Shown here one piece after another: positions 11,646-24,040 of a stretch of 64,000 nt of DNA. The stretch lies in NCBI GenBank assembly GCA_010909165.1, contig MU008181.1, forward strand, positions 744,001 to 808,000, written 5' to 3'. Positions within the stretch are counted from its first letter, which is position 1; every line of letters starts with the position of its first letter. Source of the DNA: Anthoceros angustus. Taxonomy: Eukaryota > Plantae > Anthocerotophyta. The position numbers and the translations under genes are program-made. Under the pieces are notes generated by a model. It saw nothing but the letters and a program-made list of their open reading frames with translations. It was not told the origin of the DNA and did no database searches.

Positions 11646-14933
<3,288 letters not shown>

Positions 14934-16551: not shown

Positions 16552-18555
16552 CTTGAGGGTTGTTCTTCACACGAGCTCGTGTGAAGAACAACCCTCAAGA
16601 TGGAGAAAGACTCTCTAAGGAGGCTGATCCTGAACAGCTCCTCCAATACGCTCATGTCCGCGGGAGGAGGCAGCCAACCTACAGCAATGAAGATGTCCTT
16701 TTGGAATAGGCTATGACTGAAGAAGGACACGTCCAACAGAACCCAGCAACTGGCAGTGGCGAGCAACTGGTTATGCTTAGTAAACCTAGAGGCCAGTACG
16801 AAGTAAAAGGTCATGTTTCATAAATATTAGATAGAATATTTTCTTAACTCCTAGGATGCATAAGTATGGCTGGTCTCTGACTTACAATTAGGATCGGATC
16901 AACCAATTAGAATAAAATATAACACCTACAAAAATACTGAAAATAGTCACATCAAACAATCTTAAATTTGGAAAAGAGAGAAGAATGGGACAACATTTGA
17001 ATTACACCACCAATGAACCAAAGATAGTGAAACACAAAACTAAAATAGGGAAACCAATTTGGGAGCATGGAAAAAGATCAAGTAGACACTACGATGTGAA
17101 GTATAATTGGCCTATAATAGGAAAATGATGATATTTTAATATTCATAATAATTATAGTAAAATAGTTTAATAGTCAACACCTTTGGTTTTCTAATTGTTT
17201 AAACAATTGATCTTTGATCTTCTATTGTTTTAAGATGTATAAACTTTTGAAGAGAAGATGCAAGTCCTCCGTCCTTAACTTATGAACTAATGTCTCAGTA
17301 TGATCCTAGTCAAAATAATTTTTAAATACTTCATAGTAGCCTTGTATTTTAAGTGAACCCTTTGATAGTCGATTTCCATGCTTGAAAATTATAAATCTAA
17401 TTTAACATTAGGCACTTATAAATTCCATTCTGCCATGTGGCTCCTACTACATATGCATGTACATACATACATATTGGGGCGGTGTCCGCCAAAATTTTTG
17501 ATTGCGAGAGATTTTTGATTGTTCTCGGATCCACCACCTAATAGCCAACACAAAAGCACGAAGCCTGGGAGAACACACACATGACAAAGCCTTTCAATGT
17601 GCCCCTGGTGTTGTCATGTCCTTCTGTTTCACAGGATCGAGGGCGGTTGGAGGCGTTTGACCGGGTCGGGAGTGATGGAACCTAGAACCGGTGGAAGGGA
17701 GGAGGGAGCGGGGTGCGCCACGTGGAAAGGCAAAGGTGACGTGATTAATCCAACATACGGGTTTGAATTTGCGCACGGGGAGGTGATTTTCGCAAATGCT
17801 GGCGCAAGCCTGTGAGGAGCGTCACGGTGCCACATGCGCCGCATGCGCGATGCGTGTCAGGCGTGCGTGGTTAGGGCTGGCGAACGTTGCGCCGCCTTTC
17901 GCCGCGCAGTAGGGCTTGCGCCGGGCTCCCCGTTGCGCCGGCTGCACCGGGCGAAAGACGCTGGCAAAAGAAGCAGCGAGCGCAACACGGACGCACGCGA
18001 ACGCGAACGCGAACCCGAACCCGCGAGCGAGACGAGCCAGCCAGCGAAGAAAGACGTTGGGAAGAAAGCGCAGCCCGGGAGCTTGAGGGAATGGCGTCCT
18101 AGCGCGCAGCGAGCAGGTTCTCGGATCCTCGAGACGTCTCGAATTGGATGCTCCAGCAGCTCAGTTGCTGAGCCGCTGGCTGCGCATTTCCGCGCGGCTG
18201 CCGGCTGGGAGCAAGGAGAATTGCGGGATCGGCAAGAAGGGGGGAGATTAGCAGGAGACCGAGACGTGAGTACGAGTATCGTGTAGACAGCGTGGAGGAG
18301 ATGGCAAGATGCGGTGCTTGCGGGGGTTGATTGAGTGTTGCGGCAGGTGCGGTTTGGCGGCAAGAATTTGCGTGTGGATGTCGGCAGCATGAGAAGGCGC
18401 AGGCGGGGCTGGCAGGACCGTAAGCAGGGGCAGGGAAAGAGGCAGGGTTCGGGAGGGAGGATTTGAGGAAGCGGCTTTCGTAGGGCGGGCTAAGCTCGCA
18501 CATTGGAAGACGCGGGGGTAGATCAAGCCCCGGAAAGACGGAGTACTTCAATAAT

Positions 18556-20401
18556 ATGTCTGACGAGCACCTGGCTCTATGTCTGCGTGAAAATGAAGTA
18601 GCGGTGACGCCGCCTCCGCTACAGATTAAACAAGGCGGCGGACGACCCCGGTCGCAGGTGTGGCAGCATTTCACTGCCTGCGGGGACCGGAATGACAAGA
18701 GTCGTCGATTTATTGTGAGTTGCAATGCGTGTGGTCAGAATTTGTCCAGCAGGGTGGAGGCCATGGAGAAGCATGTGGCTTATGACTGCAAGGAGGTGCC
18801 TGAGGAGGGCCGCTTGATGATCCAGCAGAAAATTGCTGGAAAGACGGCTGTGGCGGGGACTCTGGCAATTGTGGGAGCTCCTGCTCAGAAGAAGCCTAAG
18901 ACTCCGAAGATTGTGAAGCAGCAGCCTCATCTCCCCCATCATCATCAGCAGCTGCAACCGCCGTCCACTTTGATTTGCAGGGCTTGTGGTGTGCAGTACC
19001 CGCCTACTCCGGATCCGCAGCCTTGCAGAATATGCTGTGATGAGCGGCAGTATGTGCCAAGGTATGCCCGAGCACTCCTTGTTGACGGGCTTTCGTGAGG
19101 TGCTTTCTGTTGTAGATGGGTTTCTGATATAGTACTTGGCGCAATGTGTATGCCGAGCAGTATACGTGTTAGGTTTTGACCCAGTGACTGCTGGCCTTCA
19201 GAGCCTTTTCTTTAGGGCTTAGCTTATGCTTGTCAGGCACGAACATTTCTAGCACACTGATGGCTTCGAACTTACTTGAGAATGTTCTGCAGGTCTGGGC
19301 AATCGTGGACAACCATGGAGAAAATGGTCCAGGAAGGCTACAAGAACTGCTTCCAAAAGCATGAGCCTCGACTTTACGGGATTGGCACAGTTCCAAAGTT
19401 CGGAATTGGGCAGCGAGCATTTCTCATCCAAACACCTAGTAAGGGCAGCCTACCTCAGTCTGCATGAAGTGTGCTTGCTTGCATTGAAAGCAGCTGCTGT
19501 CTCACCTTGCTACTCTGATTTGGTACCAGATGGTAATCTGCTATGGGATTGCATTTCATTGGTGGATGATGCAACCATTGACATCATAAAAGCTCTTGGA
19601 GGCTTGAGAGCCATAGCGATTTCTCATCCTCACTACTATGCTTCCAATGCGCAGTGGAGTGCTGCATTTGAAGGTGTACCAGTGTACATTCATGAAAGGT
19701 GCAAGCCTTGATATTATTAATCTACTTTTGTCTCTTTTGAGCCCCATGCATTTCGTTGAATCAAGATGGATCGCTTGTTCGAAGCATTGTTGAGTGCAAC
19801 TGTGATTTCAATCGCCTCTCTGGTGCATATGTATGTGGTCACCGAAAGAGAATAGTCGGCGTTCTGAACTGGTTCCATCTTCGTTGTTGTAGGGACAAAG
19901 AGTGGGTTGTTTGGGAACATGGTAACATAAACTACTGGGGTGATCACGGAGATTCTCTTCCGTTATGGGGGGGATTCACACTTCTTCATCTTGGTGGACA
20001 CTTCGCTGGTGCACAGGTGTTGCATTGGGCAAATGGAGCAGATGGGAAGGGAGCATTGTTTACTGGCGACGTCCTGCAGGTATTGACCACATTCGAGGTA
20101 ACTCGTGAGGTTCAAGGAGCACGAGTGGAGCTTTGATGAGTTCTGACAGTGCGATGTTTGATGCGGGCAGGTTGGCATGGATCGGGAGACTGTGAGTGTT
20201 ATGCGCTCCTACCCCAATTATATTCCTTTATCTCCAGCCTACGTTGATAGATTAAGTAAGAAAATCGAGAACTGGCATTTTCACCGGCTTTATGGCGCTT
20301 TTTGGGACATGGAGATCGAGTCTGATGCGAAGTCGAAAGTCGCTTACTCATTGGAGAGATACATCAAGTGGATCATTCAAGATGAGGATCTGGAAATATG
20401 A
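18556..20401 (+). CDS. BED zinc finger fused to a CxxC/CxxC metallo-beta-lactamase-fold hydrolase (bacterial YmaE-like family)
   Basis: Exons 18556-19061, 19293-19438, 19530-19698, 19893-20079 and 20171-20401, all GT-AG and phase-consistent. BED: VWQHF...CNAC...H-x4-C. Hydrolase: CRACGVQY..CRICCDERQYV, FGIGQRAFLIQT, GNLLWDCIS, IAISHPHYY, LGGHFAG, LFTGD, MRSYPNYIPL, RLYGAFW. Confidence 0.9.
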
Positions 20402-21099
20402 TTTTTTTCAGTCTAAGAACGAAGCATGACACGCTGCACCTGGGATCTCTGACAGATATGTGTACAGGATTGCCTATTTCTTTGGATTGTCTCATTCCCC
20501 GAAATGGGTTAAGGATAACCAGAGTACACCTGAGGGTCAAAATCAGACATGTGTAGCAGCATTTTCTGCGTGGGTAATGGCTGCTTCCCTCGCTCGGTCG
20601 ACAATTGCGATGTGCTCGCACAGATGAACTCTTGTACCATCGTAGAGGTAGTACTTTCGCCCGATGATAGAATGTGCTCCTCCTCATGGACAAAAGCTGC
20701 GTCATTCTTACATCATTCGCAGGATGCTTTTTATTAGATCCCCACTCCACTGCAGTTGGACCACCGGCTCCACCCTGGCTGGCTGTTCGCTCGCCACGAT
20801 TCCTGCTCTGCTCGCTTGCATGCCCTTGGCCTTTACTAGGTATTTGCCGAAAGTTTGCACTTTCACTGGATAGAAAGCCCGGCATCCATCGCCCAATGTG
20901 TGGAGATCGACGGTAGTCAGTGTTGTAGTTTGTGAAACGTAGAACAGCCTAGGACGTGCGTTCATTGTCCTAGCGAATCGCTTTCTTGTGCACTGTGCAT
21001 GGTTGCCGATAGCTGCTTGATGTTCAGAGGGCTGGCTTGGTTTTAAGATGGCAGATAGTCTTACAATCAAACTTCACCTGCTTTTCTTTCACAATGCGG

Positions 21100-22138: not shown

Positions 22139-24040
22139 TCACGGTTGACCCTCACAACTGCAACAACACAGCTGTGAGTCCATGCACACAGTACCCATCC
22201 CTTACAACATTGTCTCTCTGTTCAAGCCTTGACATAATCTCCGTGGAACTGTGGCAGACACTGCACATGCCTAGGTTCTTCGATACCACCACAAGTGTCC
22301 AACGCAGAGTGTTCAAGAGACCAAATGCTAAAGCTAGCTTCTCAGCATGCCCACAAAGCACATCTTCCTTTTTCTTCTCAGACACTGCTTCAACACCAAC
22401 GTTGTGTGAGGTACGTGACCTCCTCCTTCCTGCTTCACACGTGCATTTGTGCTCTCTACCTTAAGCGCAACATCCTTTCTCCAATCTCCCACCAGAAATC
22501 TGTGTACTCACCTCAATGCTCGCCACTGCAGGTTCCCTGTTAGGTCCTGCTGCACTTCTCTGTGTTTCAATCCTGTCTACATCAGCCCACCTACCTGCTT
22601 CTGCATAGGCATTGGCCATGAGCACATTGGCAGATGCCATTTGAGGGTCCAGCATGACAATGCTTTCAAAACACCACACAGCCCTCTCCATATCCCTGTG
22701 ACTTTGGCAGGCATTCAACAAAGACGTCAAGCCCACAACGTTACTTTGGCCCTCACATGATAATAGCATCTTCTCTGCCTCATCTAAATGGCCCGCACAC
22801 CCAAGAAGATCAATCATGCAGGTGTAAAGCTCAATAGTAGGTTTGATGCCATGCTGTTCAGCCATGGAATCAAAGTGTTTGCGACCATCATGGACTAGTC
22901 CCTCATGACTGCATGCTGCTAGAAGGCAAGTAAAAGTAGCATCATCAGGCTGAATGCCAGCAACTAACAATCTCCTCAAAACAAGCTAGTGCCTTGTGAC
23001 CCTCATTACAAGCACCATAACCAGCAATCAGGGCATTCCAAATCGCCACATCCTTTGTCGCTGAGCTGTCCAAAACCTGGCATGCAGCCTCCAGTACATA
23101 CATGTCTACCCAGCAGTTGCCCAAGACTACGTTATCCAGCAGTCCTCCTTTGACAACCTCTGAGTGCACCTGCCTGCCCTTCTGTAAGGCACCAGTGCCT
23201 GCACAGGCTTTCAGAAGGCAGGCGAAAGTAACCTGGGTAACCAAAATCAGGCCCTCCTGCTCCATTTGTCCATACAGAACAAGTGCCTCATGTCCGAGCC
23301 CTTGCTGTGCATACCCAGCGATCAGCCATGATACCACATCCTTTTGTGCCAAGCTGTCAAAAACCTGGCATGCATCTTCACCACATTTTGCATCCATGTT
23401 CACCAGGCAGTTTGCCCACCAGTACGTCATCCAGCAGTCCTCTCTCCGCAACCTGTGAGTGCAGTTGCATGCCCTTCTGTAAGGCACCAGTGCTTGCACA
23501 GGCTTTCAGAAGGCAAGCAAAGTAACATGGTTAGCCAAAATGAGGCCAACCTCTTCCATTTGTCCATACACAACAAGCGCCTCTTGGCTGAGTCCTGGCT
23601 GTACATACCCAGCCATCAGGGCATTCCATGTCACCACATCCTTTGTGGCCATGCTGTCAAAAACCTGGGGTGCATCTTTCATTTTGCCACATTTCGCATA
23701 GATGTCCACCAGGCAATTGCCAACAAACAATTTAGTAGCAATCCCACTGTGCACCACATCACAGTGCACTTTTCTGCCAGATTCCAAGTCGGTGGCAAAT
23801 GCACAAGCTTGAAGGGCAGCTACAAAGACGTGACCTTCACTCCTGACCTACGCATCTCATGGTACAGCTGTATGGCCTCCTTAGGTTTCTCATGCTTCGC
23901 GTATGCTGAGATTATGAAAGACCACATGAAGGCATTTGGTTTCCACACCCTGGTGGACACATCCATGGCCTCCTGCAGCCTACCTCCACATGCGCATATG
24001 CGCAAGATATGGTTTCCCAAGTATCCGAATCCCTCTTAGC
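22139..24040 (-). pseudogene. PLS-class PPR-DYW:KP RNA-editing factor pseudogene (GRP-like terminus)
   Basis: PPR motifs (KDVVTWNALMAGY, KCGKMKDA, VTFACLLKAC), then EPAVASIEV, GGHVPHTTLVLK, EDVLCGHAEKLALAFGLLNT, KNLGMCSVCHSST and terminal CSCEGQP* (stop at 22139-22141), broken by several frameshifts. Confidence 0.85.

Follow-up and report, generated by a model that had tools for sequence, protein, structure and literature searches.

How a DNA-binding finger of the transposon type came to be joined to a metalloenzyme, and what the joined protein might do, is the question raised by a gene in the 64,000-nucleotide stretch of Anthoceros angustus DNA analysed here (the window). New genes are known to arise by capture of such fingers, the partners usually being regulatory domains; the partner in this hornwort is an intact, conserved enzyme. 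A preliminary description of the locus proposed that a hydrolase of bacterial or fungal type had been acquired horizontally, had gained introns and had captured the BED finger of a transposon. We favour a different account, to which we give a probability of roughly 0.55: the enzyme was inherited vertically, the BED finger was captured, and the enzyme's activity would be tethered to DNA in the nucleus. The descriptive part of this account (an ancestral enzyme gene, a BED extension, transcription and retention) is very probable in our judgement, while the putative tethering mechanism falls a little short of even odds.

The BED finger

The gene comprises five exons at 18556-20401 (+), whose 1239 nt of coding sequence specify 412 aa. 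Exon 1 (18556..19061, +), which ends at a donor GT at 19062, carries the start codon, a BED finger, a basic linker and a Cys4 ribbon in a single open frame. A single-exon join of BED finger and ribbon-MBL enzyme within a five-exon gene is what the preliminary description had proposed, and every motif named there is present where it had been placed.

The BED-type CCHC zinc finger and the helix after it occupy aa 25-100 (18628..18855, +). Its zinc ligands are C56-x2-C59 (18721 and 18730) and H73-x4-C78 (18772 and 18787), none of which varies across 40 aligned relatives; in the same alignment at least 70% of rows keep the W of the aromatic signature W36/F39 in VWQHF (W36 at 18661). The Pfam model zf-BED (PF02892) matches with E=9.5e-4 and 19.6 bits, just under its gathering cutoff of 20.6, and it also scores below cutoff in the orthologue P0064 (17.7 bits) and in the BED+DUF659 protein P0017 (18.3 bits). 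A whole-library HMMER search of 1.84 billion representatives found 61 other proteins that match residues ~25-100, with E down to 4e-21. AlphaFold models residues 30-100 with a pLDDT of 90-96 (the linker is at about 50), placing strands at 39-42, 53-56 and 62-64 and a helix at 67-77. Foldseek matches of this model are weak (E 0.2-0.5) and have BIR domains interleaved; ZBED2 (2djr) heads the list, and ZBED3 and ZBED1 are among its first 15 rows. On the sequence and the AlphaFold model taken together, we consider that the BED assignment is more than chance. After the finger comes a disordered linker, aa 101-137 (18856..18966, +), which holds a stretch rich in His and Gln as well as a basic KKPKTPK patch (18889-18909).

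Closest to the finger, at 53-58% identity, are small stand-alone BED proteins. One of these, P0002, is 53% identical to the BED region over 88 aa and 75% identical at the nucleotide level over 146 nt, and its basic patch (KRMKKEKEGRRR) resembles KKPKTPK and stands in the same place after the finger. The pattern of the subfamily, GGxP...VW.HF...C-x2-C...RVE.M..H-x4-C, is common to algal BED+DUF659 hAT-like proteins, whose fingers belong to the same subfamily as that of the hornwort, and several of the aligned relatives extend into a DGWTD-type core. The BED region of Chlorokybus P0017 is 41% identical (pairwise E=3e-16), and Klebsormidium P0020 is annotated as a BED-type domain protein. These two algal relatives are 520-759 aa long, and the transposase-like core of P0017 is absent from the hornwort gene, next to which we found no transposon ends or transposase core. 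A word-index search with the BED region returned P0001 alone among 11 candidates, a result that is uninformative, as P0002 shares many words.

Host-transposase fusion genes and domesticated BED proteins, including the vertebrate ZBED genes, have been described (bioRxiv 10.1101/2020.05.07.082677). Like the host-transposase fusions, the hornwort gene combines a transposon-type finger with a pre-existing host gene in one transcript under purifying selection. Unlike them, it has a metalloenzyme rather than KRAB, SCAN or another regulatory domain as the partner, and the join lies within one exon instead of arising by splicing to a transposase exon. A further difference is that the finger's nearest kin are stand-alone BED proteins, so that the immediate donor may have been a BED gene rather than a transposon. 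The earlier claim of a captured transposon DNA-binding domain is thus borne out as to the subfamily, which includes the algal hAT-like proteins, but is weakened as to the direct source.

The ribbon-MBL enzyme

The remainder of exon 1 (18967..19061, +) encodes a rubredoxin-like Cys4 ribbon (C141-x2-C144 ... C157-x2-C160) and then DERQYV, the two together spanning 18976-19052. The ribbon aligns with the first residues of the bacterial and plant homologues and so represents the ancestral N-terminus of the enzyme; its Cys residues are at least 90% conserved across the family, and in a cyanobacterial homologue it matches Pfam RUBY_RBDX weakly. The rest of the enzyme lies in exon 2 (GQSW...FGIGQRAFLIQTP; 19293..19438, +), exon 3 (19530..19698, +), with WDC, ISHPHYY (19619-19639; H250, H252) and H272, exon 4 (19893..20079, +), with GGHF (H310) and TGD (D333), and exon 5 (20171..20401, +), with SYPN (aa 349-352) and the stop codon at 20399-20401.

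The AlphaFold model of the MBL fold has a pLDDT of 95.4 and a pTM of 0.92, and Foldseek gives it a probability of 1.0 against many MBLs. VIA places 79 chains at Z of at least 8, the nearest solved fold being Ava_3068 of Anabaena variabilis (2p97; Z=20.2, rmsd 2.5 A over 194 aligned residues). That protein is itself a putative hydrolase; its identity is 16%, and the alignment starts only at model residue 53, which leaves the ribbon outside. These comparisons confirm, for the predicted structure, the alpha-beta/beta-alpha sandwich of the MBL fold. Pfam PF00753 scores 17.4 bits in P0064, below the cutoff of 22.7, and 23.7 in the cyanobacterial homologue, above it; precomputed PF00753 matches occur in 10 of the best 120 relatives. 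Searches of Pfam, NCBIfam and PDB sequences with single enzyme exons gave no matches, because the pieces were too short; the full-length protein was reached via bacterial loci and P0064, a member of the P0001 cluster. A kinship with Vms1, considered after a PDB profile search with the family alignment, was rejected as a chance GGHFAG match only.

As had been noticed at the outset, the canonical H-x-H-x-D-H of motif 2 is replaced, here by H250-P-H252-Y-Y, with Tyr for the Asp and Tyr again for the second-site His. This form is family-wide, bacteria included. H310, D333 and H272 are invariant, D224-C225 is also present, and the site expected for motif 5 is SYPN, which has no His. The enzyme core is intact: all 30 family-invariant residues are kept (30/30), and a single near-invariant position has changed, P to Q at aa 155.

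More than 7,000 ribbon-MBL relatives were found, and the family is widespread in soil bacteria; relatives of exon 5 are encoded at 436 bacterial loci (41-55% identity). The bacterial proteins have the same Cys4 ribbon + MBL architecture and invariant residues as the hornwort enzyme, with 41-57% identity, while their genes have neither introns nor BED and are labelled 'MBL fold metallo-hydrolase' or 'glyoxylase-like metal-dependent hydrolase'. Among 80 bacterial loci we found no gene neighbour that is conserved across phyla, and the second-largest cluster of neighbours proved to be an antisense ORF artefact of high-GC DNA.

Novelty of the fusion and selection on it

In the exhaustive HMMER search, BED finger and ribbon were joined only in the hornwort lineage's own cluster (P0001), the 61 other proteins having the BED alone. 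A search of the Atlas for a BED-MBL fusion returned only bacterial MBL clusters, and searches for publications on a BED + metallo-beta-lactamase fusion, hornwort zf-BED, Mp4g07340 or HGT of Zygnematophyceae MBL found nothing relevant. The suspicion that this architecture is uncatalogued elsewhere is upheld by that single cluster and by the literature searches. Sequence comparison indicates that the novel part is confined to exon 1, to its first ~137 codons.

A divergent second copy, L084/L085, keeps the fusion with 89% aa identity and silent sites near saturation; overall, pS between the two copies is 0.61 and omega 0.05. Within BED codons 25-100 there are no aa changes among 76 and 25 silent changes (pS 0.51, omega about 0.01), against 30/244 aa changes in the MBL core (omega 0.045). 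Eight of the 37 linker residues differ, with AQKKPKTPK identical. L084/L085 could be a paralogue rather than an orthologue of the window gene, which would change the dating and leave the evidence of selection as it is. That the finger is conserved more strictly than the enzyme suggests that the combination does real work.

What the fused protein might do

The ancestral streptophyte gene encoded a metalloenzyme of about 280 aa with a Cys4 ribbon and an MBL fold, and had four conserved introns. In the hornwort lineage, exon 1 was then lengthened at its 5' end by about 137 codons, specifying BED, helix and KKPKTPK. Under the account we favour, the donor may have been a gene of the P0002 type for a small stand-alone BED protein, kin to the hAT-like BED+DUF659 fingers, and joined in frame upstream. 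The basic KKPKTPK patch, a putative NLS, would take the protein into the nucleus, where the finger would bind specific DNA; a mono- or dinuclear metalloenzyme, still active, would thereby be brought to chromatin. Such a nuclear, DNA-bound form hints at a possible connection between the substrate of the enzyme and nucleic acid or chromatin.

It would also offer experiments a way in. Both Anthoceros agrestis and Marchantia are transformable.

An alternative, which we regard as unlikely, is that the protein is a ligand-sensing transcription factor. The BED finger would be its working part, and the MBL domain, no longer an enzyme, would act as a sensor of small molecules, metal or redox state, switching the binding of DNA or bringing in partners. 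The lack of any amino-acid change makes the finger the most conserved part of the protein, HPHYY falls short of the canonical HxHxDH motif, and captured transposase DNA-binding domains typically yield transcription factors (bioRxiv 10.1101/2020.05.07.082677). However, a motif that bacteria also have is no sign of decay after the fusion, and the enzyme retains the complete set of family-invariant residues and the low omega given above. Furthermore, on the tree the stem leading to the fused pair (0.27) does not exceed the branches of the BED-less plants in length.

The favoured account also has a stronger form, in which the BED finger would deliver an active metalloenzyme to defined DNA sites, giving sequence-directed catalysis on chromatin, nucleic acid or a local metabolite. 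If true, this would be a kind of catalysis not yet described in plants, and the fusion would also be the first way to approach the function of a large uncharacterised family, one that is kept by all non-seed land-plant groups sampled, is shared with soil bacteria and was not found in seed plants; we think it rather improbable.

We give still less credence to the idea that the finger does not target DNA at all, serving instead as a protein-protein, RNA-binding, regulatory or decoy-like module of a cytosolic enzyme. Some BED domains do act without known DNA binding, for example the integrated BED of plant NLR immune receptors, and we count these in its favour, together with the occurrence of ZBED3 (a Foldseek match) in the cytoplasmic complex structure 9l4j. 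Against it, the conserved KKPKTPK next to the finger is consistent with a nuclear signal, P0002, the closest relative, carries its similar patch at the same place, and transposase-like proteins, whose BED is a DNA-binding domain, belong to the subfamily.

Ancestry of the enzyme

Liverworts, mosses, lycophytes, Psilotum and zygnematophyte algae have orthologues of 273-308 aa that lack the BED finger. Among these are Marchantia MPTK1_4g07340, Physcomitrium LOC112284116, Selaginella LOC9640785 and Diphasiastrum O6H91_13G097400, with further examples from Sphagnum, Ceratodon, Riccia, Psilotum, Mesotaenium and Spirogloea. These streptophyte proteins are 57-65% identical to the hornwort protein over ribbon + MBL and share DERQ[YF]V, IGQRA, WDC, SHPH[YF]Y, GGHF, GD and S[YF]PN with it, while they begin a few residues before the ribbon (12 aa in Marchantia) and lack both finger and basic linker. 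We found no hidden BED in the Physcomitrium model P0215 (387 aa), which is an old over-extended gene model, or in the Diphasiastrum protein (308 aa).

In an unrooted tree of streptophyte and other sequences, all named ones among the others being bacterial, the streptophyte orthologues form one clade (100/100), in which the algae are sister to the land plants (96/96) and the order resembles the species tree. The Marchantia gene has its introns at all four positions of the hornwort gene (4/4). Since clade and introns are shared, acquisition of the enzyme and gain of its introns must long predate the hornwort lineage. We conclude from this phylogeny that the enzyme is no recent import and that its descent has been vertical from the common ancestor of Zygnematophyceae and land plants, if not for longer; the streptophyte ancestor may have received it from bacteria.

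The scenario of the preliminary description, taken literally, has a bacterial or fungal gene entering the hornwort lineage, gaining introns there and capturing a transposon BED. What made it tempting is genuine: outside the streptophytes every close relative with a name comes from bacteria (Planctomycetota, Bradyrhizobium, Chloroflexota, Cyanobacteriota and others; 41-57% identity), and the best 120 relatives contain no seed-plant protein. The bacterial half of the claimed affinity and the contrast with seed plants therefore stand, but no fungal connection of the hydrolase was seen. With Zygnematophyceae, liverwort, moss, lycophyte and Psilotum orthologues in one clade of species-tree-like order, and with the introns common to Marchantia, any transfer predates land plants and is unconnected with the hornwort lineage or the BED capture. 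Vertical inheritance, which the preliminary description had itself listed among the findings that would count against it, corrects the story of horizontal transfer, and we consider the literal scenario very improbable.

Transcription of the fused gene

Introns 1 (231 nt; 19062..19292, +), 2 (91 nt; 19439..19529, +), 3 (194 nt; 19699..19892, +) and 4 (91 nt; 20080..20170, +) all have GT-AG borders, and all four junctions, that of intron 1 in every run, are matched exactly by spliced contigs assembled from four public runs (four studies, four coded organisms). Three of the four transcript contigs cover the 5' leader, the BED codons and the enzyme exons without a break and reach the 3' UTR, which answers the call for RNA-seq reads across the BED-ribbon span and the junctions. 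The contigs begin at 18020 (X2 and X10), 18092 (X11) and 18436 (X1), so defining a leader of at least 536 nt (18020..18555, +), and the 3' UTR extends over 20402..20902 (+), where the X1 contig ends at 20902. A scan of the gene for bacterial-type promoters and terminators, irrelevant to a eukaryotic gene, gave nothing.

In the translation of 18406-18600 there is an in-frame stop 24 codons 5' of the ATG at 18556, with no ATG between. Transcript contigs cannot show where transcripts start, so a minor internal start is possible. A BED-less isoform arising from an internal AUG was considered and ruled out: after M88 the frame contains no further ATG before the ribbon, and any AUG-started product that contains the ribbon therefore carries the BED finger.

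The cluster's sole database representative, P0001, is a 227-aa model that reads through intron 1, and might raise the suspicion of a chimera of assembly or annotation, or of a read-through of two adjacent genes that has no function. Such an artefact is extremely improbable: BED and ribbon share one uninterrupted ORF inside one exon; the same structure recurs in the genome window, in L085, an independent genomic contig of 7.5 kb, and in spliced contigs from five runs; and purifying selection on the gene is strong. The fused BED-MBL gene is real, transcribed, correctly spliced and conserved.

The fusion gene and its transcripts

The gene under study occupies 18556-20401 of the forward strand and consists of five exons (18556-19061, 19293-19438, 19530-19698, 19893-20079 and 20171-20401, all +), whose 1239 coding bases specify 412 amino acids. 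Its introns are short and each is bounded by GT-AG; GC content is 49.5%. In the translation, the BED finger residues W36/F39, C56-x2-C59 and H73-x4-C78 are followed by the basic patch KKPKTPK (aa 112-118), a His/Gln linker, a Cys4 ribbon (C141-x2-C144 and C157-x2-C160, then DERQYV) and the enzyme motifs IGQRA, ISHPHYY (aa 248-254) and SYPN, so that every motif claimed in the preliminary description is found where it was placed, within this five-exon model. An in-frame stop lies 24 codons 5' of the ATG, and the intervening stretch is free of ATG. Furthermore, after M88 the frame offers no ATG until the ribbon is reached, and an AUG-started protein with the ribbon but without the BED finger is therefore impossible.

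Transcript evidence came from Logan contigs of four runs, each from a different study and coded organism, which were mapped on 17800-21000. The sequence of one organism matches the window exactly, and those of the other three differ by a few percent in the UTRs. All four predicted exon joints are present in all four runs, and in three of these one unbroken contig, beginning at 18020, 18092 or 18436, crosses the BED codons and exons 2-5 and enters the 3' UTR. These contigs lend no support to transcription beginning downstream of the BED finger, which would have undone the proposed fusion, although contigs cannot map starts.

The 5' leader (18020-18555) is long (at least 536 nt) and GC-rich, and several short upstream ORFs lie within it, including an ATG-started one at 18309-18392. 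A 57-aa upstream ORF called in the divergent second copy of the gene is not conserved in the window.

Comparison with a divergent copy

Two sequences represent this divergent copy, the spliced transcript L084 and the genomic contig L085 of 7.5 kb. Between it and the window gene, protein identity is 89%, with silent sites close to saturated (pS 0.61; omega 0.05). BED codons 25-100 show no amino-acid change, with silent changes in 25 of 73 degenerate codons; in the linker 8 of 37 residues have changed, with AQKKPKTPK kept. Of the residues that are invariant across the enzyme family, the window protein retains all 30, and only one near-invariant residue is changed. Purifying selection acts on both halves. 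The gene encodes an obligate protein of BED finger plus enzyme, which is expressed and conserved in both parts.

The 5' end of the coding sequence (window 18517-18700) shows unusual conservation of silent sites: only 7 of 45 degenerate codons within codons 1-48 carry a silent change relative to the divergent copy, against 139 of 304 elsewhere (Fisher p=8e-5), and ∼40 nt 5' of the ATG are likewise conserved. This could reflect an RNA-level constraint on the leader or the start region, or gene conversion.

The enzyme half and its ancestry

Exon 5 alone matches 436 bacterial loci at 41-55% identity, in Planctomycetota, Bradyrhizobium, Chloroflexota, Dormibacterota, Gemmatimonadota and Cyanobacteriota. 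These bacterial relatives, of ∼265-290 aa, start straight at the Cys4 ribbon and DERQYV. They also carry AISHPHYY, and the incomplete HxHxDH is thus a trait of the family, not a decayed motif. With Pfam Lactamase_B, a cyanobacterial member reaches 23.7 bits and the plant orthologue 17.4 bits, both near the edge of detection. The AlphaFold model of the ribbon and MBL part is confident (pLDDT 95.4), and Foldseek matches it to MBL structures with probability 1.0, the best structural match being the uncharacterised Ava_3068 (2p97; Z=20.2, rmsd 2.5 Å, 194 residues). Sequence search detected no solved structure of any family member, and no substrate is known for any member.

Ancestry was traced with the enzyme part of P0064 as query, supplemented by cluster look-ups and inspected N-termini; P0064, derived from a transcript contig, belongs to the cluster represented by P0001 and is an orthologue or paralogue of full length. 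Its top matches, which lack a BED finger, are plant proteins 273-308 aa long. Such BED-less proteins occur in lycophytes (Diphasiastrum, Selaginella), liverworts (Marchantia, Riccia, Calypogeia), mosses (Ceratodon, with Sphagnum and Physcomitrium via cluster look-up), the fern Psilotum and the zygnematophyte algae Mesotaenium and Spirogloea. An unrooted IQ-TREE phylogeny of 70 rows recovers a single streptophyte clade (100/100) in which embryophytes have Zygnematophyceae as their sister group (96/96). Liverworts form a monophyletic group, as do mosses; the window protein groups weakly with vascular plants. FastTree (197 rows) agrees.

The Marchantia protein begins 12 aa before the ribbon, and its gene has four introns at exactly the same protein positions as the window gene, so for land plants both the enzyme gene and its introns are ancestral. 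Given the streptophyte clade and these common introns, the proposal that the enzyme was horizontally acquired and then gained introns is inapplicable to this lineage. It is possible that the ancestor shared by Zygnematophyceae and land plants received the gene from soil bacteria, an event that an unrooted tree cannot show. Only ∼137 codons at the beginning of exon 1 are new in the fusion gene.

The BED half and its relatives

Pfam zf-BED matches aa 33-73 with E=9.5e-4, one bit below cutoff. With exon 1 as query, exhaustive HMMER searching of 1.84 billion representatives returned 62 proteins, of which 61 match residues ∼25-100 only. Named relatives include Chlorokybus P0011, P0017 (zf-BED plus DUF659) and P0023, and Klebsormidium P0020 ('BED-type domain-containing protein'). 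C56, C59, H73 and C78 are invariant in the alignment, and in several rows a DGWTD-type transposase core follows the BED finger. Residues 30-100 are modelled as folded (pLDDT 90-96) with disordered flanks, and ZBED2, ZBED3 and ZBED1 are within the top structural rows, although these matches are weak. Closest are the small stand-alone proteins P0002 (185 aa) and P0003 (187 aa). P0002 is 53% identical over 88 aa and carries a basic patch at the matching position, and its contig shows 75% DNA identity to the window over 146 nt.

P0006-P0010 and P0019 are small BED proteins sharing a second conserved motif at the C-terminus, IP[LF]RLRFPQ[VA], and may form an as yet undescribed stand-alone family.

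Uniqueness and possible function

Outside this lineage's own cluster, the exhaustive search found no BED finger joined to the ribbon among the 1.84 billion representatives; ESM Atlas neighbours were bacterial MBL clusters only, and literature searches found no published work on the BED and ribbon-MBL architecture. The claim that the architecture had not been described before is borne out to that extent. The observation made in the preliminary description holds, while its interpretation does so only in part, horizontal acquisition and intron gain in this lineage being the part that fails. Host genes are known to capture BED fingers; what is unusual here is the enzymatic partner.

As to function, the basic patch would serve as a nuclear signal and the BED finger would bind DNA, and together they may bring an active metalloenzyme to chromatin. 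There are two rival explanations. The first is that the protein is a ligand-sensing transcription factor instead of a chromatin-bound enzyme, while the second is that the BED module does not bind DNA.

Flanking sequence and the second copy

The contigs of one RNA run (X10, organism C) have a loose end at window 18516, where 30 letters match the sequence upstream of the divergent copy (L085 3510-3560), and the same run holds low-depth contigs identical to the version of organism B. Such a pattern would reflect either a two-species sample mix or the presence of both copies in one genome as paralogues.

The upstream neighbour is homologous between the window (14067-14897) and L085 (2-904) and syntenic, and the downstream neighbour (window 22900-23850) matches L085 6581-7528 in opposite orientation. 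A 91-nt non-coding block at window 17789-17879 is 72.5% identical to L085 2703-2786; outside it, neither the remaining leader nor the introns can be aligned. The block occupies the stretch 140-230 nt before the transcript contigs begin and is a candidate promoter element.
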